The position numbers and the translations under genes were made by a program. 58,190 bases of DNA, taken from NCBI RefSeq assembly GCF_030028105.1, contig NC_092376.1, forward strand, positions 175,648,143 through 175,706,332, written 5' to 3'. Shown piece after piece: positions 3,961-44,269 of this stretch. This DNA comes from Mobula birostris (lineage: Eukaryota). The notes beneath the pieces are model-generated. The model was not told the DNA's origin, did not search any database, and saw only the letters and a program-made list of their open reading frames with translations. Positions within the stretch are counted from its first letter, which is position 1. The number at the start of each line of letters is the position of its first letter.

Positions 3961-4382
3961 ATCTACTGGCTACAAGTCAGATATCAACAGTTATCAGTCA
4001 AATCTGATGTTAATAAAAGAATCAATCTATGCAATTAATGTTTGTCTGGGGAGTAAAGCTGGTCTAGATGACCCCATCCAACGCTGCGGCTTCCTTAAGC
4101 TTTAAAAACTGTAAGAGATGAGAAAAACACGTTTCAGTTTGGAAATTATCATGAGGAATTTGGTTCTACAATTCCTTTATCTTTGAATATTTGCAATACA
4201 GAGCTGGACAGGTTCTTAATAAGCAAAGAGCTCAGGAGGTTACTGGACACAGGCAAGAATTTTTTACGTTTAGATTTAGGTTATGCAGGGTGATTTGATC
4301 AGCCAGTATATCACAAGCACACAGAACAGGAGCAAGAGCCAGCCATTCGGCCCCACTGCCCTGCTCCTCTCCAGAGTGTTTG

Positions 4383-4575: not shown

Positions 4576-4720
4576 CTGAGGAAGGACAGGCAAATTTAAT
4601 TAGAGGATTAGGGAAGCGAGAGGCTGGGTAGTTTAGTCAGACAAAGCAGCTATTTCTGTACTGGACATCAAAGGACACTCCATGTTACTCATGTGTCCAA
4701 GCCTAAAGTGCTTGACTCAC

Positions 4721-4754
4721 CTGGGTTTAGGAAGCCGAAAGGTGGAAAGAGAGT
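4721..4754 (-). CDS. CD74: Probable CD74 penultimate exon (Y/D)SLSTFRLPKP
   Basis: Perfect donor CAG|gtgagt at 4720. The acceptor at 4755 gives an open phase-1 frame starting xSL, like human exon 7 (ESL). The alternative acceptor at 4765 has a better pyrimidine tract but gives an immediate stop. Confidence 0.5.
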
Positions 4755-5359: not shown

Positions 5360-6640
5360 ATGCCAGAATCTATTGATTCTTGAAAGATCATCGTTAATGC
5401 CTCTGCAATCTCTCCAGCTACTTCCTTCCAAACCCATCAAATCCAGGAGATGCATCCACCCTCAGACCATTCAGCTTCCTGAGCACCTTCTCAGTGGTAA
5501 TTTTCACCGCACAAACTTCACTTCCCTGACACTCTTGAATGTCCGGTATACTGCAGATGTCTTCCATTGTGAAGACTGATGCAAAATACACATTCAGTTC
5601 CTCTGCCAACTCTGCATCTCTCATTACAATATCTCCAGCGTTATTTTGTATTGGTCCTATATCTACCCTTGACTCTCTTTTATATACTTAAAAAGGCTTT
5701 TAGTCTCTTCTTTGATATTAGTCACCTGCTTCCTCTCATAATTCATCTTTTCCTTCCGAATGACCTTCTTAGTCTCCTTCTGCACATTTTTAAAAGCTCC
5801 CCAATCCTCTGTTTCCCACTAGCTTTGGCTTCCTTGTATGCCCTCTCTTTTGCTTTTACTTTGGCTCTGACTTCACTTGTCAGCCACGGTAGTGTCCTTC
5901 TTCCCTTTGAAAATTTCTTCTTATTTGGAATATATATTTTCAGCAGAAACTCCAGCCATTGCTGCTCTGCTGCCTTTCCTGCAAATGTCCCTTTCCAGTC
6001 AACTTCGGCCAGTTCCCCTCTCAAGCCATTGTCATTTCCTTTATTCCACTGAAATACCAACACATTGGATTTTATTTTTGCCCTCTCAAATTTCAATGTA
6101 AACTCGCTCATATTGTGATCAGTATTCCCTAAGGGTTCCGTAACCTTAAGCTCTCTTATCACCTCCAGATCATTGCACAACACCCAGTCAAACACAGCTG
6201 ATCCCCTAGTGGGCTCAACAACAAGCTGTTCTAAAAAAGCCATCCCTTAGACATTCTACAAATTCTCTCTCGAGATCCAGTACTGATCTGGTTTTCCCAA
6301 TCCATTTTCATGTTAAAATCCCCAACGATTATCATAACATTGTCTTTCTGACACGCCTTTTCTATCTCCTGCTGTAATTTGTAATCCTCATCACGTGTAT
6401 GTATAATTCTGGATTTCCAGCATCTGCATAATCTCTTGTGTTTATAAGTCTCTATAAGGTCACACCTTGGGCTCATACAGTCCAGGGTATCTGGTTTCTT
6501 CTTATAACTCAAAACCTTCCATCCAGATAACATCCCTGAGTGAAGGTTGGTGGTGTGGACAGTGTTGATACGGGACATTGATACGATGCAGAGCTGGACT
6601 GAAAAGTGGCAGATGGAGATCAGCCTGGAAAAAGTGTGTA
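5360..6640 (-). mobile_element. CR1 LINE ORF2 fragments
   Basis: FLEQLVVEPTRG..DHNM endonuclease end, IIVGDFNM, and the DLIETYK C-terminal motif. Confidence 0.88.
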
Positions 6641-7146: not shown

Positions 7147-7344
7147 ATTTGCAACTATCCAGGGGTTTTCGAGTTGCGGTTCCCTCAATCTTAGTCCCAT
7201 TTGGATAGGTGCACCAGCAGAATCCCGTACTGGGCCAACACTGCTTCGGTTCAAAGTCCCCATCCTGGTCACAGCTGGGACGGAAACTGCCAGGAATCAT
7301 CTTCTCCCTGCGCTGCCTCTCACAGTCAGTCTCTGGTCTCTTGG
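7147..7344 (-). CDS. CD74: CD74 thyroglobulin type-1 exon (p41-type): KRPETDCERQRREKMIPGSFRPSCDQDGDFEPKQCWPSTGFCWCTYPNGTKIEGTATRKPLDSCK
   Basis: 198 nt, symmetrical phase 1-1; acceptor ttttcccctgcgcag, donor gtaggc. Six Cys, PGSFRP, QC and CWC motifs and an NGT sequon, as in human exon 6b. Confidence 0.96.
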
Positions 7345-11754: not shown

Positions 11755-11862
11755 CCCTTGTTACAGGCACCAGTTCGGGCATTTCGGTTGCCTTGGGTTG
11801 GTCTGCGGAGAATGGCAGAAGGTGGAGCATTGGCCTCATCGCCATGCTGGACATCTTCCTAC
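11755..11862 (-). CDS. CD74: CD74 extra exon: second CLIP-like segment (G)RKMSSMAMRPMLHLLPFSADQPKATEMPELVP(VTR)
   Basis: Acceptor gtttttgcttcaacag, phase-1 entry in frame with exon 6, gapless similarity to exon 3. The donor is ambiguous: CCT|gtaaca (end 11765, phase 0) or GGG|gtagct (end 11755, phase 1, in frame with the Tg exon). Confidence 0.75.
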
Positions 11863-16420: not shown

Positions 16421-16592
16421 ACTCTCGTTACACCACAAGCAAACTCTAGCTTCTAGAAGAGATGACGGAAGAGGTGGGCTGGAGTGGGAGGAATGGTCGA
16501 ATATAGTGTCAATTAGACAGCCAACAACTGCTACATACCCTGAGGCTGGGGTTGGATCCTGGGTGCTCTGGTCGGAGCAGGTTTCTTCTCAC

Positions 16593-16641
16593 CCTGAACA
16601 AGTTGGAAGAGAAGCCAGTTCTGAAGCCAAGATTCAAATTC
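16593..16641 (-). CDS. CD74: CD74 exon 6: trimerization domain end EFESWLQNWLLFQLVQ(G)
   Basis: Acceptor tttctgtgttttccag, donor CAGG|gtgaga, 49 nt, phase 0 to 1. Matches human VFESWMHHWLLFEM. Confidence 0.95.
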
Positions 16642-17659: not shown

Positions 17660-18100
17660 CAGGCAGCACGATATCGTAGTGGTTAGCATAATGCTTTACA
17701 CACCAGTGATCGGGGTTCAATTCCCACCGCTGTCTGCAAGGAGTTTGTGTGCTCTTCAGATAGGAATCCCAGATAGGAACACACGGCGTGGTAGCATAGA
17801 GGTTAACGTAATGCTTTACAGCACAAGTAATAGGGGTTCAATTCTGCTGCTCTCTATAAGGAGTTTGTACGTTCTCCCCGTGACCATGGGAGTTTCCTCC
17901 GGGTGCTCCGGTTTCCACCAACTTTACAAAAACGTACAGTTTGGCTTAGTGAGTTATGGGCATTCATTCTATGTTGGCACTGGAAGGGTGGCAACACGTG
18001 CGGGCTGCCCCCAGCACATCATTGGATTACGTTGGTCGTTGACACAAATGACACACTTCACTGTATGTTTTGACGTTTCGATGTACACTTGACAAATAAT
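17660..18100 (+). mobile_element. tRNA-derived SINE cluster (further copies e.g. 18790-18960, 19660-19840, 24370-24660, 26820-27060, 28700-29420)
   Basis: A box TAGTGGTTAG and B box GGTTCAATTCC followed by the shared core gtaaggagtttgtacgttctccccgtgacc. Confidence 0.85.
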
Positions 18101-19092
18101 CTTTAATCTTGGTCAGCACGGGTGAGTTGGGCCAAAGGAGCCTGTTTTCATACTGTGATTGTATGGAGCACAAAGGCCAAATAGACCAAATGATTCTTCC
18201 TATAGTGTAGCTTGCAGAGGTAGTTACTTTAACGGAGTTGTGGCGCATAGAACACCCTGCTGGACTGTGGTGGTGGAGGCACGCACCTTGGGGACATTTA
18301 AAAGACTCTTAGGTGGGCACCTGGGTGATAGAAAAATGGAGGGCTATGTGGAAGGGAAGGGTTAAATTGATCTTAGAGCAGGGTAAAATGACGGCACAAC
18401 ATCATGGACAAAAGGACCTGCACTGTGTTATAATGTTATATGTTCATGTTCTATATTCTGTGTTCTGAAGTCTGTGTTTTGTGGTCCGTGTTCTGTACTC
18501 TAAAACTCTACAATAGGTTTCAATAGGCACATTTAACGTCACAGAAATGTATACAATATACATCCTGAAATTATTTTTCTTCGCAAACATCCATGAAAAC
18601 AGAGAATTACCCCAATGAATGAATGACAGTTAAAATGTTAGAACCCCAAAGCCCCCCCTCAAGTCCCCCTCACACACCCAAGCAGCAACAAGGCAGTGAC
18701 TACCCCCTACCCCCACCAGCAAAAACGCATCAGCACCCTCCACCGAGCACTCAAGCGTGCAGCAGAGCATCAAAAAACAAGACACATTAGGGCAGAATGG
18801 TAGTGGAGTGGTTATCACAACACTTCACAGCCCCAGCGACCCGTGTTCAATTCCTGCCGCTGTCTGTAAGAAGTGTGTACGTTCTACCCGTGACCGCGTG
18901 CCTTTCCTCTGGGTGTACTGGTTCCTCCCTCAGGCCACAGGCGTACGTGTTGGTAGGCGCGTTTGAAACTGAATGGCATGTGCTTGCTGTGCCGGGAGGA
19001 CCGGTTCCCTCAATAAATAAAACAGCTAAAGCACTACAGCTGACAGGAAGAAACCCTCTCCACAACCAAGTGATTTTCCCGCCATCACACAC

Positions 19093-19188
19093 CTGCCAGT
19101 CAGTTTCCTTCAGGTTCTGTTTCAGGAGTTTCAGGTTGTTGGAGAAACCCTCCTTCAGTTCTGGCATCTCCACGCTCTTGTTTCCTTC
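19093..19188 (-). CDS. CD74: CD74 exon 5: trimerization domain EGNKSVEMPELKEGFSNNLKLLKQNLKETDWQ
   Basis: Acceptor caactccag, donor CAG|gtgtgt, 96 nt (same as the human exon), phase 0 to 0. Resembles [25 protein letters not shown]; NKS sequon. Confidence 0.94.
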
Positions 19189-20257
19189 CTGGAGTTGAAC
19201 GGGAAAGAGAATATGACTGTCAAACCAACGCTCCTCCAAAGAAGACAAGAGGTACTCAGCTTCTAGCCTTAAATCTCCTCAATAACGAGAGACACAAGGG
19301 AGCGTAGGTGCTGGAATTTGCAGTGACATACGGCTGCAGGAACTCAGTGCCTATGGGGTGAGGGGAAGGAAGGAAGGAATTGTTGCTGTTTTGTGTTGAA
19401 ACCCTATCTCAGGACCGAGAATGGAGAGGGGAGGTGACTGGTATAGAGCAGGGAGAAGAGGAGAGGATTCCGTGCAGATTGGCAGACTGAGAAGGGGTGT
19501 GGGATGACAGGCCATGGTGACAGGTAGGGAAGTGGGGTTGGGAGACAGTATTAGGTGAGTGATAGATTGAGACAGACAGATGATTCTGGAAGCACAATGG
19601 CACAGTTCACTGAAAGCAGCCACAGGTAGGTGGAGAAGGCATTTAGCCCAGCGGAACAGTAGTGTAGCGGTTAGTGCAATCACTTTACATCACCAGTGAT
19701 CACTGATCGGGGTTCAATTCCCACCGCTGTCTGTAAGGAATTTGTACGTTCTCCCTGTGACGACATGGGTTTCCTCCAAATAATCTGGTTTCTTCCCACG
19801 TTCCAAAGATGTTCTGGTTAAGGTTAGTGAGCTGTGGCCTAGACTGAGTGGATGTGGAGAGATGTTTCCTATAGTGGGGGAGTCTAGGACCAGAGGGCAC
19901 AGCCTCAGAATAGAGGGACGTCCCTTAGAAAACAGAAATGAGGAGGTATTTCTTTAGCCAGAGGATGGTAAATCTGTGGAATTCAGTGACACAGACGGCT
20001 GTGGAGGCCAAGCTATTGGGTATATTTAAAATGTAGGTTGATAGGTTCTTGATTAGTTAGGGCATTAAAGGTTACGGGAGAGAAGGCAGAAGAATGGGGT
20101 TGAGGGGGATAATAAATCAGCCATGATGGAATGGAGGAGCAGGCTCGATGGGCTGAATGGCCTGATGCTGCTCCTGTCTCTCATGGTGTACAATGGGCCA
20201 GATAGACTCTCTTTGTGCTCTGGGAATCAGCGGTTGGACAGCAGATCAGAGACACAC

Positions 20258-20317
20258 CTTCAGTAGCTGTTGCACTTGTTCCAGCATGCTCGTCGGCTGG
20301 GGAGTGGTTGCCGGAGC
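20258..20317 (-). CDS. CD74: CD74 exon 4: APATTPQPTSMLEQVQQLLK
   Basis: Acceptor gtgttttccacag, donor AAG|gtgtgt, 60 nt, phase 0 to 0. The C-terminal half resembles human MTEDHVMHLLQ. Confidence 0.9.
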
Positions 20318-20517
20318 CTGTGGAAAACACAAGGGTGAAGAAGATGACCATCCCAGTGTTCACAACTGTCATCGTGCACTTATTCTCAAACTACGTGTAC
20401 GTCACCATATACCACCTTAAAGTTCATTTTCTTACAGCAAGTCACAGGAAAACTAAGAAATAGAATAGAATTTATAAAGAACAAGATGTAAATAATGACA
20501 GACATTGTGCAAAAGAA

Positions 20518-20781
20518 NNNNNNNNNNNNNNNNNNNNNNNNNNNNNNNNNNNNNNNNNNNNNNNNNNNNNNNNNNNNNNNNNNNNNNNNNNNNNNNNNNN
20601 NNNNNNNNNNNNNNNNNNNNNNNNNNNNNNNNNNNNNNNNNNNNNNNNNNNNNNNNNNNNNNNNNNNNNNNNNNNNNNNNNNNNNNNNNNNNNNNNNNNN
20701 NNNNNNNNNNNNNNNNNNNNNNNNNNNNNNNNNNNNNNNNNNNNNNNNNNNNNNNNNNNNNNNNNNNNNNNNNNNNNNNNN
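20518..20781. other. Assembly gap (264 N) in CD74 intron 3
   Basis: Run of N. Confidence 1.
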
Positions 20782-20902
20782 GGGGGGGAGAGGGGGGGGG
20801 AGAGGGGGGGGGGAGAGGGGGGGGGGAGAGGGGGGGAGAGGGGGGGAGAGGGGGGGGAGAGGGGGGGGAGAGGGGGGGGAGAGGGGGGGGGAGGGGGGGG
20901 GA
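20782..20902 (+). repeat. (G7-10 AGA)n G-rich simple repeat
   Basis: Seen directly; adjoins the gap. Confidence 0.95.
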
Positions 20903-21200
20903 GATAGATAGAGTTCTATTCTGAATCAATGGAAGGTTCTTCAAGTCTCCACTGACCCCCAAGGACTGGCATCTGTTGAAACTAATTTGATGGACTGTGT
21001 CCATCAATGTCATCACAAAGTCACTCTCCCACCCAGTGAGATACTTCCACAGAGCAGTCTATGCACAGTTGTACTGGCAAAACATTCCCCCACCCACATG
21101 AAAACCAGCCAACAATTCATCCCTCTAATTCATGTGCCTTCTCTCCCTTTCACACATTCACTCTATCACAACTTCCTCATTGCCTCCGATGGAAGGTCAC

Positions 21201-21283
21201 CTTTGGAGCCTCGGCCTTGGGGTCTATGTACGACATAGGGAGATCCATGATCATGGGCCGCATATGCATGACTGGTTTCGGTC
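21201..21283 (-). CDS. CD74: CD74 exon 3: CLIP (R)PKPVMHMRPMIMDLPMSYIDPKAEAPK
   Basis: Acceptor ttttacccttcag, donor AAG|gtgacc, 83 nt, phase 1 to 0. Matches human [20 protein letters not shown]. Confidence 0.93.
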
Positions 21284-22101
21284 CTGAAGGGTAAAAAAAT
21301 TGGAATTGCTTTATCACTGTTACATGTATTGAGATACGGTGAAAAGTTTGTCTTGCAGTCTGTTCACACAGATCAGATCATTACACGGGGCATTGAGGTA
21401 GAACAAGGGAAAACAATAACAGGATGCAGAATAGAGTGTCACAGTTACAGAGAAAGTGCAGTGCAGGTAGACAATAACGTGCAAGGTCATAACGAGGTAG
21501 ATTGTGGTGCCAAGAGACCATCTTATCGTACTCTTATTGTTCACCCAGAACAAGGGCATCACAGTAGTCTGGCAGTTAGTATAACATTTTACATTGCCTG
21601 CTGTCTATAAGTTGTCTATAAGGAGTTTGTACGTTCTCCCAGTGACCACGTTGGGTTTCCTCTGGCTGCTCCAGCCTCACACTCCTTTCAAACCTCTCCC
21701 CGCTGACATTAAACTTCTCTCCTCTATTTTTACTTGGGAATACGGCACAATAACAGGCCCCTCCAGTCTGAAGAGTCCGCCACACCCAATTACCCCAAAG
21801 TGACCAATTAACCTACTAGCCCTTACGCTTTTGGAATGTGGAGGAAACCAGGGCAACCAGGGCACCTGGAGGAAACCCACATGGTCACGAAGAGAACGTG
21901 CAAACTCCTTTCAGGGGACAGCAGGAATTGAACCCAAGTCACTGGGGCTGTAGAGTGTTGTACTAACCACCACATTTACCATCCATCTCACTTGTGTGAG
22001 TCGTTTTGCAATCTGATCGGTATCCAGATGTTTGAATACGGAATCCACACAGCTCATTTCAGTGGGATTAGATCTGAACGGAAGTCAGGGAGCGTGCTTA
22101 C

Positions 22102-22280
22102 TGAACGGGCCGCTGCTTGGTTGGCGCTTGCGTTCAATCCGATCCGTCGTCTTCTGCAGGTTCGTTATCTTGTCCTGTTGTTTCAACAGGAACATGACAC
22201 TGACCACCTGCCCAGCGATCAGCATGGCCACCAGGATCGACACGCCGCTGTAGAGGAAGACACGCTTCCAGCTGGTGCCC
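22102..22280 (-). CDS. CD74: CD74 exon 2: TM/membrane-proximal GTSWKRVFLYSGVSILVAMLIAGQVVSVMFLLKQQDKITNLQKTTDRIERKRQPSSGPF
   Basis: Acceptor ctgctttcag, donor gtaagc, 179 nt, phase 2 to 1. Resembles human [26 protein letters not shown]. Confidence 0.96.
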
Positions 22281-32664: not shown

Positions 32665-32777
32665 CTCTGGGTAGTGACCTGGCTGGGAGCCATCGATCGG
32701 ACCTCCACATCGCTGTGACTGACGATGTCCTGCTGAGAGTTCCTCAGCAAAGCATTCTGCTGTTCGTCCACAGACAT
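32665..32777 (-). CDS. CD74: CD74 exon 1: cytoplasmic tail MSVDEQQNALLRNSQQDIVSHSDVEVRSMAPSQVTTQ(R)
   Basis: Kozak ggcaccATG; acidic-dileucine motif DEQQNALL; 113 nt ending in phase 2 at donor AG|gtgaga, in frame with exon 2. Confidence 0.93.
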
Positions 32778-34624: not shown

Positions 34625-36597
34625 AAACAAAATAGGTGCAGGAGTAGGCCATTCGGCCCTTCGATCCTGCAACACCATTTATTATGATCATGGCTGATCG
34701 TCCAACTCAGAACCCTGCACCAGCCTTCCCTCCATACCCTCTGATCCCCCTAGCCACAAGGGCCATATCTAACTCCCTCTTAAATATAGCCAATGAACTG
34801 GCCTCAACTGTTTCCTGTGGCAGAGAATTCCACAGATTCACCACTCTCTGTGTGAAGAAGTTTTTCCTAATCTCAGTCCTAAAAGACTTCGCCTTTATCC
34901 TCAAACCGTGACCCCTCGTTCTGGACTTCCCCAACATCGGGAACAACCTTCCTGCATCTAGCCTGTCCAATCCCTTTAGGATTTTATACGTTTCAATCAG
35001 ATCCCCCCTCAATCTTCTAAATTCCAATGAGTACAAGCCTAGTTTATCCAGTCTTTCTTCATATGAAAGTCCTGCCATCCCAGGAATCAATCTGGTGAAC
35101 CTTCTTTGTACTCCCTCTATGGCAAGGATGTCTTTCCTCAGATTAGGGGACCAAAACTGCACACAATACTCCAGGTGTGGGCTCACCAAGGCCTTGTACA
35201 ACTGCAGTAGTACCTCCCTGCTCCTGTACTCAAATCCTCTCGCTATAAATGCCAGCATACCATTCGCCTTTTTCACCCCCTGCTGTACCTGCATGCCCAC
35301 TTTCAATGACTGGTGTATAATGACACCCAGGTCTCGTTGCACCTCCCCTTTTCCTAATCGGCCACCATTCAGATAATAATCTGTTTTCCTATTTTTGCCA
35401 CCAAAGTGGATAACTTCACATTTATCCACATTAAATTGCATCTGCCATGAATTTGCCCACTCACCCAACCTATCCAAGTCACTCTTCATCCTCTTAGCAT
35501 CTTCCTCACAGCTAACACTGCCGCCCAACTTCGTGTCATCCGCAAACTTGGAGATGCTGCATTTAATTCCCTCATCCAAGTCATTAATATATATTGTAAA
35601 CAACTGGGGTCCCAGCACTGAGCCTTGCGGTACCCCACTAGTCACTGCCTGCCATTCTGAAAAGGTCCCGTTTATTCCCACTCTTTGCTTCCTGTCTGCT
35701 AACCAATTCTCTATCCACATCAATACCATACCCCCAATACCATGTGCTTTAAGTTTGCACACTAATCTCCTGTGTGGGACCTTGTCAAAAGCCTTTTGAA
35801 AATCCAAATATACCACATCCACTGGTTCTCCCCTATCCATTCTAATAGTTACATCCTCAAAAAATTCTATGAGATTCGTCAGACATGATTTTCCTTTCAC
35901 AAATCCATGCTGAGTTTGTCCGATCATTTCACCGCTTTCCAAATGTGCTGTTATCACATCTTTGATAACTGACTCCAGCAGTTTCCCCACCACCGACGTT
36001 AGGCTAACCGGTCTATAATTTCCTGGTTTCTCTCTCCCTCCTTTTTTAAAAAGTGGGGTTACATTAGCCACCCTCCAATCCTCAGGAACTAGTCCAGAAT
36101 CTAACAAGTTTTGAAAAATTATCACTAATGCATCCACTATTTCTTGGGCTACTTCCTTAAGCACACTGGGATGCAGAGCATCTGGCCCTGGGGATTTATC
36201 TGCCTTTAATCCCTTCAATTTACCTAACACCACTTCCCTACTAACATGTATTTCCCTCAGTTCCTCCATCTCACTGGACCCTCTGTCCCCTACTATTTCT
36301 GGAAGATTATTTATGTCCTCCTTAGTGAAGACAGAACCAAAGTAATTATTCAATTGGTCTGCCATGTCCTTGTTCCCCATAATCAATTCACCTGTTTCTG
36401 TCTGTAGGGGACCTACATTTGTCTTTACTAGTCTTTTCCTTTTAACATATCTATAAAAGCTTTTACAGTCAGTTTTTATGTTCCCTGCCAGTTTTCTCTC
36501 ATAATCTTTTTTCCCCTTCCTAATTAAGCCCTTTGTCCTCCTCTGCTGAACTCTGAATTTCTCCCAGTCCTCAGGTGAGCCACTTTTTCTGGCTACC
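34625..36597 (-). mobile_element. Young 5'-truncated CR1 with an uninterrupted RT reading frame (ORF 34707-36611, 634 aa)
   Basis: KSPGPD, NYRPVSLTS, YLDFQKAFDKVPH, GVPQGSVLGP and KFADD with no stops; no endonuclease domain; intact 3' tail. Confidence 0.97.
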
Positions 36598-36959
36598 TGC
36601 ATTGGGCCCATTTCCCTCCTTTCCTCTCAGACATTATAATTGTGTCCACCTTGACCACTTGCTCCAACAGCTCGTTTATACACCCACCACCCTTCAGTGT
36701 GGATAACTTCACTCAGCTACTTCCACCACCTACAGACTCTCTCTTATGGACACTACCACACATGTTCTCAGTCTTATTGTATTCATAGTTTGTCTTCTTT
36801 TGCACGTTGATTCTTTGTCAGTCTTTGTTTTTGTATCATTTTTTATAAAATCTACACTATTTCCTCATTTTCCTGTAAATGCCTGCAAGGAAATGAATCT
36901 CAGCTTAGTATATGGTGACATATATGTACTTCAATAATAAATTTATTTTGACTTTGACC

Positions 36960-40750: not shown

Positions 40751-43489
40751 CACCTTGTGTGAGTTGCTCTGGATTTCCAGCACCTGCCGAATCTCTTGTG
40801 CTGAGAATTTAAGCCTGGCTCCAGCACTGATTTCTCTTTCCCAATGCAGGCTGGCTTTATCCAAACAGATCAGTTCAGGGTAAGAGGCCATTCAGCCCTT
40901 CGACTGCTATTCTGCCACTCAGTTGTCTGGAATTGGAATTTCAACTAGATTTGTGTTATTGTTGTCACACTATAGGGATATAGTGAAAGGCATCGTGTTG
41001 TAGAGCACTACAGCACAGATACAGGCCCTTCAGCCCATCTAGTCCATGCTAAACTGTCAATTCTGCCTGGTCCCATTGACCTGCACCCAGACCACAGCCC
41101 TCCACTCCCTTCCCATCCATGTACTGATCTAATTTTCTCTTAAACCTTGCAGTCAAAGCCACGTCCACCATTCTTTAAAGCCTCCATCACCCAGGACGTG
41201 CCCTCTTCTCATCGCTACCACCAGGGAGGAGGTACAGGAGCCTGAAGACCCACACTCAATGATTCAGGTACAGTTCATCGCCATCAGATTTCTGAATGGA
41301 CAATGAACCTATAACCTCTGCCCCAGCTTTTTCCCTCACTTTTTGTGCTACTTATTTAATTAAATTTCCAATATATATTTTTATTGTGATTTTCAGATAT
41401 TTTATCATGTACTGCTGCCCCAAAACAACAAGTTTCACAACATATGCCGGTGATATTAAGCCTGGTTCTGATTCGGATTCAGATTCCACTGGCCACTCGT
41501 TCCACACTCTCACCACCCTCTGCGTGAAGGAGATCCCCCTCAGCCTCCCCCCTAAACATTTCACCCTTCACCTTTAACCCATGACCTCGAGTTCTCATCT
41601 CACCTCTCACCAGTTCAGGTGAAAAGTCACATCAGTAGGTGCCTGGTGTTGAATCGGCTTGGTGGCAGGAAGAGGAGCTCTGAGACACAAGGCTTGTAAA
41701 GTTGTGGCAGCATGAAAGCAGGCCACTCAGCCCATCTAGTGCATGGCAAACTACTCCCATCAGCCTGCACCCGGAACATAGCCCACCACACCCCTCGTCT
41801 CCATGTACCTATCTAAATTTCTCTCAAATATTCATACCGTTCACACTGATTGAATCACATCAATTCATGACAGTCAGATGGACTCAGCGGGAGGCCTTGA
41901 CTCTATGAATCAAAATCAGCTTTAATATCACCGACATGTCGTGAGGCCCATCGCCTCCCTCTGGTGCTCCTCCCCCCTTTCTTCCATGGCCTTCTGTCTT
42001 CTATTAGACTCTCCCTTCTCCAGCCCTGTATCCCCTTTCATCAATCAACTTCCCAGCTCTCTACTTCATCCCTCCCCCTCCTGGTTTCACCTATCACCTT
42101 GTGTTTCCCTCTCCCCTCCTTTTAAATCTACCCCTCAGCTTTGTTTTCTCCAGTCCTGCCCAAGGCTTTTGGCCTGAAACATCGACTGTACTCTTTCCAC
42201 AGATGCTGCCTGGCCTGCTGAGTTCCTCTAGCATTTTGTTTGTGTTGCTCGGACTTCCAGCATCTGCAGGTTTTCTCTTGTTTGGCATATGTCGTGAAAT
42301 TTGTTGTTTTGCGGCAGCAGTACATTGGAATACATAATTTAAAAACTATAAATTACAATGAGTATTGTATATGTGCTGTACAAATGCACAAGGCATGTGT
42401 CAACACCTGGAATTATGATATTGTAGCAATTACTGAGACTCGGTTGCAAGAGGGGCAGGACTGACTCTATATTTCAGGTTTCCGTTGTTTTAGACAAAAC
42501 AGTGGGAAGGATTAAAGGAGGAGGGGGTGGTGTTACTTGTCCGGGAAAATGTCACGGCAGTGCTCCATCAGGACAGACTGGAAAACTCGTCTAGTGAGGC
42601 GTTATGGGTCGAAATGAGGAATAAGAAAGGTATGACCATGTTGATGGGGCTCTATTACAGACCACCCAACAGTCAGAGAGACTTAGAGGAACAAATTTGT
42701 AGAGAGATTGCAGACTGTTGCAAGGAACATAAGGTTGTGATAGTAGGTGATTTTAACTTTCCATGTATTGACTGTGACTCCAACATTGTAAAAGGACTAG
42801 AGTTTGTCAAACGTGTTCAGGGAAGTTACCTTAAACAGTACATAGAAGTCCCAACAAGATGCTGGATCTGCTGTTAGGGAACGAGACAGGGCAGGTGACA
42901 CAAGTTTGTGTAGGGAACACTTTGCATCTAATGATTATGATGGCATTAGTTTCAATGTAATTATGGAAAAGGAAAGGTCTGGTCCTTTGGTTGAAGTTCT
43001 AAATTGGACAAAAGGCCAATTCTGATGGTATCAGAAAGGATCTGGCAAGTGTGGATTGGGACGAGCTGTTTTCTGGCAAAGGTGTACTTGGTAAGTGGGA
43101 GGCCATCAAAAGAGGAATTTTGAGAATACAAAGCTTGCATGTGCCTGTCGGGCAAGGATAGGTTTAGGTAACCTTGGTTTTCAAGTGATATTGAGGCCCC
43201 GGTTAAGAAAAAAAAGCAGATGTATAGCAGGTATAGGCATGTAAGGACAAAGGTGGTACTTGAAGAGCATAAGAAATGCAAGAGAACACGTAAGAATGAA
43301 ATAAGGAGGCTACAAGAAGGCATGAGGTTGCCCTAGCAGACAAGGTGAAGGAGAAACTGAGGAACTGTAAGAGCAACAGGATTGCAAGGGACCAAATTGG
43401 TCATCTGGAAGATCAGCATGGTAATGTCTGCATGAAGCCAAAAAGATGGAGGAGATCTTAAATGTATTTTTTGCATCTGTGTTTACTTG

Positions 43490-44269
43490 CTGATGACATC
43501 GTACTAATAGCTGACTCAGAAACAAAACTTCAAGAACTACTCACTATAGTGGCAGCAGAAAGTAATCGCAGAGGCCCCTCAATCAACACCAAGAAGACAG
43601 AAAGCATGGTCATCTCCAGAAAGACAAACATCCCACAATGCGTGATCAAGATCGGAAATACAAACATCAAACAAGTCAATAAATTCAGATATCTTGGCAG
43701 CCTAATAACAAGTGATGGCAGGTGTGACACAGATATCAAATACAGAACAGCAATGGCAAAAGAAGCTTTCCAAAAAATGAAGAGCATATTAACAGACAGA
43801 AAGATGAGCACATACACTAAGAACAGAATACTGCAGCGCTACATTTATTCTATCCTGATTTATGGAAGTGAATGCTGGACCATTTCCCCAGCAATGGAAA
43901 AGAGACTAGAAGCAGCTGAATTATGGTTCTACAGGAGAATGTTAAAAATATCACGGACCACACCACATCAAATGAAGAAGTTCTCAGAAGAACCCAAGCA
44001 GTTCGATCACTCATACCAACAATAAGAGAAAGACAACTCAGATTCCTAGGACACATCATGCGGAAAGATGAACTAGAAAAACTCATACTCTCTGGAAAGA
44101 TTGTGGGGAGCAAAACTAGAGGAAGACCTCGGCTTATGTACATCAAAAGCATAGCCAGGTGGCTACACATCGAGGAAATGGAAGTCATCCAAAGAACGAG
44201 GGATAGATCTATATGGAAAACCATGGTCACTAAAGTCCACATCGGATATGGTACCTAGACAGACAGGCA
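43490..44269 (+). mobile_element. RTE-clade LINE, 5'-truncated, with 8-bp TSD TTTACTTG
   Basis: ADDIVLIAD..FRYLGS..YGSECW..RQLRFLGHIMRK..RGRPR with one frameshift; (CAGA)n tail; TTTACTTG at 43482-43489 and 44270-44277. Confidence 0.93.

Follow-up and report, generated by a model that had tools for sequence, protein, structure and literature searches.

Cartilaginous fish have no DM (PMC8010645), and how class II molecules shed CLIP and gain good peptides without it, in cartilaginous as well as ray-finned fishes, is discussed in the literature and unsettled (PMC8010645, PMC4219347). The CD74 locus of the manta Mobula birostris raises the question of whether the invariant chain (Ii) of such animals carries, in addition to CLIP, a second segment of the same kind. 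We analyzed a stretch of 58,190 nucleotides of this genome (contig NC_092376.1, positions 175,648,143 to 175,706,332; hereafter the window), and all positions given below are counted from its first letter. An earlier note, made from the letters of the window, had described an extra in-frame exon after the trimerization domain and had compared it to CLIP. We find that this exon is real, that it lies between the trimerization domain and the thyroglobulin exon, and that it is significantly CLIP-like.

The CD74 gene of Mobula birostris

The window contains a CD74 gene of nine exons (E1 to E9) on the minus strand, and the mapped exons correspond to the RefSeq protein P0008 (XP_072120227.1, 317 aa). 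Exons 1 to 8 were placed by exact spliced alignment of this protein; a pattern search then supplied the short last exon. Chondrichthyan CD74 proteins were gathered by querying exon 2 against 1.84 billion representative proteins, followed by a word-indexed search.

E1 (32665-32777) encodes the start codon and the cytoplasmic tail. E2 (22102-22280), recognized by splice sites and by Pfam MHC2-interact (E=1.7e-13) as well as by mapping, encodes the transmembrane segment and stalk and leaves in phase 1; the Pfam family covers the protein from the transmembrane segment to CLIP. The canonical CLIP exon, E3 (21201-21283), is entered in phase 1 and left in phase 0, and its core, MHMRPMIMDLPMSYIDPKA (21213-21269, minus strand), can be aligned to CLIP in all CD74 proteins. 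The trimerization region starts in E4 (20258-20317, 60 nt) and continues with the first part of the trimerization domain in E5 (19093-19188; MHCassoc_trimer, E=4.7e-5). E6 (16539-16641; MHCassoc_trimer, E=4.5e-5) encodes its second part together with a Pro/Gln-rich spacer, and leaves in phase 1. The exon in question, E7 (11755-11862, 108 nt, phase 1/1), is defined by mapping, by its splice sites and by orthologous exons. It is followed by E8 (7147-7344, 198 nt, phase 1/1), which encodes the thyroglobulin type-1 (Tg) domain (Thyroglobulin_1, E=4.9e-16; also supported by mapping and by AF2), and by the last coding exon, E9 (4095-4108), which was found after ...cttacag, encodes ..FFKA and the stop, and matches the C-terminus of P0008.

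The product is a type II membrane protein with an MHC2-interact transmembrane segment and stalk, a trimerization domain (PF08831) and an optional Tg domain (PF00086), and both Tg-plus and Tg-minus isoforms occur in relatives. The "exon 3" of the earlier note is indeed E3. The extra exon is E7 and not E6, because the 60-nt exon 4 exists.

Several other features of the locus were recorded. At 4690-4740 (minus strand) lies a remnant of an optional penultimate CD74 exon ending ..GFLNPG/gtgagt, whose read-through is GFLNPGESSTLGLD, compared with SFLNPDDPNISGLG in Pristis X1. Its donor at 4720/4721 is perfect, and tcg replaces the AG acceptor just upstream. The exon is missing from the RefSeq proteins of Mobula and Hemitrygon, and it may therefore be decaying in myliobatiform rays. 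Inside E6, at 16592 (minus strand), there is a strong alternative donor, CAGG/gtgaga, in phase 1. Its use would remove the Pro/Gln-rich spacer EKKPAPTRAPRIQPQPQ in frame; no isoform using it was seen.

Three retroelement ORFs were found: an intact-looking ORF of 634 aa with a reverse transcriptase domain (34707-36611, minus strand; RVT_1, 7.7e-34) some 2 kb ahead of the first CD74 exon, a reverse transcriptase fragment (43462-44025, plus strand; 1.1e-7), and an endonuclease-like ORF with no Pfam match (5746-6246, minus strand) in the last CD74 intron. We recognized no second cellular gene at 33-58 kb of the window. A SINE-like repeat family (17704-19819 and 21611-21704), with four copies of 61-88% identity and a box-B-like motif, GGTTCAATTCC, is dispersed over CD74 introns 2, 4 and 5. 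Intron 3 holds a run of N (20518-20781), either masked sequence or a gap, that is flanked, within the region 20456-21058, by a simple repeat translating as PPSPPLSPP on the minus strand.

E7 resembles the CLIP exon

Read as its reverse complement in the phase-1 frame, E7 encodes (G)RKMSS-MAMRPMLHLLPFSADQPKA-TEMPELVPVTR, with the CLIP-like core MAMRPMLHLLPFSADQPKA at 11789-11845 on the minus strand. The exon is bordered by a polypyrimidine tract with a ...caacag/GT acceptor and by a GGG/gtagct donor. Its core aligns without gaps to the core of E3 with a BLOSUM62 score of 47, and the two agree at 32/57 nucleotides. The identity of 11/19 residues given in the earlier note (where the first peptide of the pair is exon 3 and the second the extra exon, a point of wording that we clarify here) was reproduced. 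All six synonymous-codon differences that it listed (CGG/AGG, CCC/CCA, CTC/CTG, CCT/CCA, TCG/TCC, GCC/GCA) are correct, and the splice sites bear out the phase-1 entry of both exons. The exits differ, however, E3 being left in phase 0 and E7 in phase 1. The motif is offset from the acceptor by 14 nt in E3 and by 17 nt in E7.

With the window translated in all six frames, the runner-up 19-mer has a score of 29 (versus 47). Second-order Markov simulations of the window, 300 in number, never gave a score above 40 (Gumbel p ~4e-4 for 47). When the DNA of E3 and E7 was aligned together with the flanks, the likeness was confined to the MxMRPM core and the flanks did not align; no direct repeat links the two exons, and this comparison gave no evidence of a recent duplication. 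Pfam returned no match, even at E<=10, either for the isolated CLIP exon or for E7. Since it is silent on a bona fide CLIP exon too, it cannot judge the CLIP-likeness of such short pieces.

At the level of the family, the consensus cores are MHLRPMMMDLPIAYIDPKAEAPK for CLIP and MAMKPMMVDLPLAADAKESKAPK for E7. Comparison of two 17-species alignments, one of CLIP and one of E7, with hhalign gave P=5e-6 at a probability of 86%, and when the columns of the E7 alignment were shuffled, which keeps its composition, the observed profile-profile score was reached once in 5000 shuffles. Eight CD74 loci (236 kb), translated in six frames and cut into 9,626 segments free of stops, were searched with HMMs. 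The CLIP-exon HMM placed the eight CLIP exons on top and then E7 exons at ranks 9-14 and 17, and the E7-exon HMM placed the eight E7 exons on top and then all eight CLIP exons at ranks 9-16. CLIP and E7 are thus reciprocal next-best matches at the profile level. Among 119 bony-vertebrate CD74s, the top eight matches of the E7 HMM all fall on the CLIP region, although weakly (iE 0.09-0.9). In sequence, E7 is related to bona fide CLIP.

Identity between the CLIP and E7 cores of one species has a median of 4.5/19 in 22 species. It amounts to 10-11/19 in myliobatiform rays, 3-8/19 in sharks, 2-4/19 in skates and 1-2/19 in chimaeras, and the manta E7 is the most CLIP-like of the species compared. 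Similarity between CLIP and E7 was not higher within than across species (p=0.66-0.76); nothing therefore points to gene conversion, or suggests that CLIP and E7 both follow the class II groove of their own species.

The CLIP exon itself is 80 nt long in Scyliorhinus canicula (L007) and 77 nt in S. torazame (L008), compared with 83 nt in six other loci, and the annotated Scyliorhinus proteins have small indels right before the MHLRPM core (RPKQMM-IRP, RP--MMHLRP). The difference may be genuine, or it may stem from wrongly placed acceptors in the models.

E7 is constitutive and predates the split of chimaeras and elasmobranchs

We found E7 in all but one of 44 protein models or transcripts of chondrichthyans (~24 species), whether or not these contain the Tg exon or the penultimate exon. 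The set spans skates, rays, sawfish and an electric ray, lamniform, carcharhiniform, orectolobiform, heterodontiform and squalomorph sharks, and Callorhinchus with a second chimaera. Squalomorphs are counted as covered because the protein tree groups the UniRef entry P0018 with Heptranchias. The sole model that lacks E7 (P0020) is an ab initio "hypothetical protein", and the 43 isoforms from RefSeq or RNA all retain E7. Inclusion of the Tg exon and of the penultimate exon, by contrast, varies within the same species. Given its inclusion in 43/44 regardless of Tg, E7 is constitutive across the chondrichthyans sampled, unlike the Tg exon.

The earlier note had proposed that the exon be looked for in transcripts, and there it is present, in RNA-derived contigs of a skate (two) and a chimaera (one). 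These Logan contigs (~1 kb) contain uninterrupted CD74 coding sequence including E7, and they must come from spliced RNA because CD74 genes span >20 kb. The two skate contigs (L001, L002) stem from independent runs and represent the Tg-minus form; the chimaera contig (L003) represents the Tg-plus form.

In genomic DNA, an E7 orthologue of 84-111 nt, always a multiple of three, lies at the same site in seven other loci, namely those of a second Mobula, Hemitrygon, Amblyraja, two Scyliorhinus, Chiloscyllium and Rhincodon. The exon measures 84 nt in the orectolobiform sharks Chiloscyllium, Hemiscyllium and Rhincodon. Its splice sites are conserved in the seven loci (cag/G ... G/gtaact), and the window's own donor, gtagct, deviates from this by one base. 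The protein of the second Mobula species (P0033) differs from the window by three residues inside E7.

Callorhinchus milii (P0049) and the second chimaera (P0002, 75% identical) have GRKMISSMMFKPMAL at the position of E7. The exon thus predates the split between chimaeras and elasmobranchs. It is absent from the CD74 of coelacanth, gar, sterlet and paddlefish, and from every bony-vertebrate CD74 in which the distance from the trimerization domain to the Tg domain was measurable (32/119; the bichir protein, which does not match the measuring pattern, is outside the 32). This distance is 26-37 residues in the 32 bony-vertebrate proteins, compared with 68-78 in chondrichthyans. Scanned with the E7 profile, none of the 119 bony-vertebrate CD74s gave a convincing match downstream of the trimerization motif.

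Selection acts on few positions of E7

We estimated omega by GY94 maximum likelihood from codon alignments of ten sequences, with each region treated separately on a fixed inferred topology. Omega was 0.26 for the N-terminus and transmembrane segment, 0.17 for CLIP (LRT versus 1, p=5e-11), 0.37 for the trimerization domain, 0.55 for the spacer (p=0.067) and 0.39 for Tg (p=4.5e-10). E7 as a whole gave 0.47 (p=5e-4), its core 0.44 (p=0.009), and its tail 0.57, which is not significantly below 1 (p=0.056). Counting by NG86 (Nei-Gojobori), pooled over four independent recent pairs, gave ~1.0 for the E7 core (5 synonymous and 19 non-synonymous differences) and ~1.5 for the tail (4 synonymous differences), both from small counts, and 0.37 for CLIP. 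For E7, the pairwise NG86 values (~1) and the tree-wide GY94 values (0.44-0.47) disagree. E7 is clearly the least constrained part of the CD74 protein, and its constraint is weak and concentrated on few sites.

Two statements of the earlier note have to be qualified in this light. It had named a dN/dS near 1 as speaking against its reading; the tree-wide estimate lies significantly below that value, whereas the pooled recent pairs, with their small counts, come close to it. It had also suggested an old duplication kept under protein-level selection. The age is borne out by the chimaeras, which share E7, and selection by the omega of the whole exon, but selection holds only a handful of sites and is looser than that on CLIP.

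Across 22 species, only the Pro of the E7 core is invariant. The Gly is found in 20/22 and each of two Ser in 21/22 species, a Met two residues before the Pro in 18/22 and a Met right after it in 19/22. The residue before the Pro is K or R in 14/22 species, and S or Q in the other eight, which include skates, Heptranchias, S. torazame, Narcine and a Squalus-like sequence. The expectation that MxMRPM would be conserved in orthologous linkers therefore did not hold, neither its Arg nor its Met residues being fixed. About six positions are strongly conserved, and the core follows the pattern GR[KR]x[FY]SS x x M [KRSQ] P M [ML] x x L P. Taken jointly, the reality of E7, its constitutive inclusion, its taxonomic range, its significant CLIP-likeness and the weak purifying selection on it are results in which we have high confidence.

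Predicted structure and anchor pattern

In an AF2 model of the manta protein, based on the 22-sequence alignment, only the Tg domain folds well (pLDDT 77-88), and the trimerization helices are of moderate quality. The CLIP region and residues 191-246, which comprise the spacer and E7, are coil in this single-chain prediction (pLDDT <50). Like CLIP, E7 is thus predicted to be an extended, unstructured lumenal segment. It does not share the position of CLIP between the transmembrane stalk and the trimerization domain, and instead comes after the trimerization domain and the Pro/Gln-rich spacer of ~15 residues.

Human CLIP binds DR in a register with a hydrophobic residue at P1, a small or hydrophobic one at P4, Pro at P6 and Met at P9. 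We compared anchors by setting the invariant Pro at P6, in the register of human CLIP-DR, which may not be that of fish class II. Chondrichthyan CLIP (CLIP1) has I, V or M at P1, L, M or F at P4, Pro at P6 and Met at P9, and in the human register its sequence fits all four anchors. In E7, P1 is Ser in 21/22 species, P4 is Met in 18/22, P6 is Pro and P9 is variable. If the invariant Pro does occupy P6, two main anchors, P1 and P9, would be missing from E7. Should E7 bind the groove, its sequence would suit a ligand that is weaker than CLIP1 or bound in another register.

Origin and possible function of E7

E7 probably arose from an old duplication of the CLIP exon rather than by convergence. 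The CLIP exon would have been duplicated into the phase-1 intron ahead of the Tg exon before chimaeras and elasmobranchs separated, and the E7 copy would later have recruited a downstream donor, by which phase 1 was restored. As to function, we tentatively favor, at a little short of an even chance, a mechanism in which the core of E7 has kept its contact with the peptide groove of class II and serves as an additional placeholder, weaker than CLIP. Tethered by ~15 flexible spacer residues to the membrane-distal end of every Ii chain, E7 could cover a groove left free by CLIP, or a further class II dimer, or it could compete with CLIP. Against this explanation speak the omega of E7 compared with that of CLIP (0.47 versus 0.17) and the recent-pair values of ~1.0 and ~1.5, the Ser at the P1 equivalent and the variable P9, the S or Q before the Pro in eight species, the low identity to CLIP in most species, the missing excess of within-species similarity, the location of E7 C-terminal to the trimerization domain, and the different exit phases of E3 and E7. 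A role of E7 as a second CLIP is plausible and testable, and would be of interest because cartilaginous fish have no DM.

The main rival, in our judgment only slightly less probable, is that E7 is a diverged duplicate of the CLIP exon that no longer contacts the groove. It would then serve as a flexible hinge and as an entry or recognition site for proteases, positioning or releasing the Tg domain and starting the C-terminal degradation of Ii, and the conserved GR[KR], SS and MxP would form a cleavage or docking motif. Predicted disorder, a length that varies from 84 to 111 nt and the fastest evolution in the protein (a tail not significantly below neutrality, recent pairs at ~1-1.5) all agree with a hinge, as does the name "extended linker" under which the region is reportedly known. 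So do the Ser at the P1 equivalent and a conserved N-terminal GR[KR]..SS that has no counterpart in CLIP. A mere spacer, however, would not be expected to keep the CLIP-like core M-x-P-M-[ML] in all lineages from before chimaeras and elasmobranchs diverged, or to be the reciprocal best match of CLIP profiles, and in bony vertebrates ~30 residues of spacer, without an exon of this kind, suffice for the Tg domain.

Less probable still is a chance likeness, in which two Met/Pro-rich disordered segments converged with no common origin and no CLIP-related function of E7, and the 11/19 of the manta is a lineage-specific high point. The manta and the stingray are indeed outliers from the median over species, with chimaeras at the opposite end, the motif is short, the exit phases differ and the DNA flanks of E3 and E7 do not align. 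The profile comparisons make this unlikely, since both the column shuffles (1/5000) and hhalign (P=5e-6) argue against it and the reciprocal next-best HMM matches recur in essentially every locus among the 9,626 segments. Moreover, the two exons share their entry phase and have a similar offset of the motif from the acceptor (14 versus 17 nt), and the E7 HMM picks out, weakly, the CLIP region of teleost Ii.

That E7 is a cassette exon, optional like the Tg exon and serving mainly isoform diversity, including E7-less or trimerization-less forms, is very improbable and was rejected on the isoform evidence: its symmetric phase 1/1, shared with the Tg exon, the phase-1 exits of exons 2 and 6, which leave several skips in frame, and the deviation of the window's donor gtagct from the gtaact of seven other loci would all allow it, but 0/43 RefSeq or RNA-derived isoforms skip E7 while the Tg and penultimate exons vary in the same species, and the single E7-less model, P0020, is ab initio.

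The earlier note had further suggested that two CLIPs might serve different class II lineages. The DA and DB lineages arose in the ancestor of sharks once rays had branched off, and the main difference between them lies in the Ig domain (PMC8010645). We rejected this idea for DA and DB, because E7 is older than the DA/DB split and is also present in rays and chimaeras.

Comparison with known parts of the invariant chain

E7 and the CLIP region encoded by CD74 exon 3 are both disordered and Met/Pro-rich, with a central Pro followed by Met/Leu and with phase-1 entry. E7 differs in evolving two to three times faster in terms of omega, and in having its own conserved GR[KR]..SS N-terminal flank. 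Its neighbor, the alternatively spliced Tg exon (mammalian exon 6b, p41 isoform), is likewise of phase 1/1. The Tg exon encodes a folded, cysteine-rich domain (Pfam 4.9e-16, pLDDT ~80-88) that is optional in RefSeq isoforms, whereas E7 is unstructured and constitutive.

The Ii of the nurse shark is reported by Criscitiello et al. 2012, a study cited in PMC8010645, to have an "extended linker" preceding its thyroglobulin-like domain. This linker, which is at the same position and specific to cartilaginous fish, is almost certainly the same exon as E7, which orectolobiform sharks possess. A full-text literature search, over sources other than Criscitiello et al. 2012 (Dev Comp Immunol 36:521) and Dijkstra & Yamaguchi 2019, found no description of the Ii linker as CLIP-like or as an exon duplicate. 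The exon itself is known, as the linker of shark Ii.

What E7 may mean for peptide loading in cartilaginous fish

The resemblance of E7 to CLIP suggests that the Ii of these DM-less animals may hold a second element able to bind the groove. A far-reaching version of this idea, which we consider improbable, is that every cartilaginous-fish Ii carries two working groove ligands, with E7, tethered and of low affinity, competing with CLIP or taking part in a hand-over with it, or with one Ii trimer chaperoning six class II dimers. If this were true, E7 would supply part of the role that DM has in tetrapods, and it would represent a previously unrecognized, ancient solution to peptide loading without DM. 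Even if E7 does not bind the groove, it would still document an ancient internal exon duplication in Ii and redefine the "extended linker". As a constitutive second CLIP-like segment, E7 is a concrete and cheaply testable candidate for a part in DM-less peptide loading.
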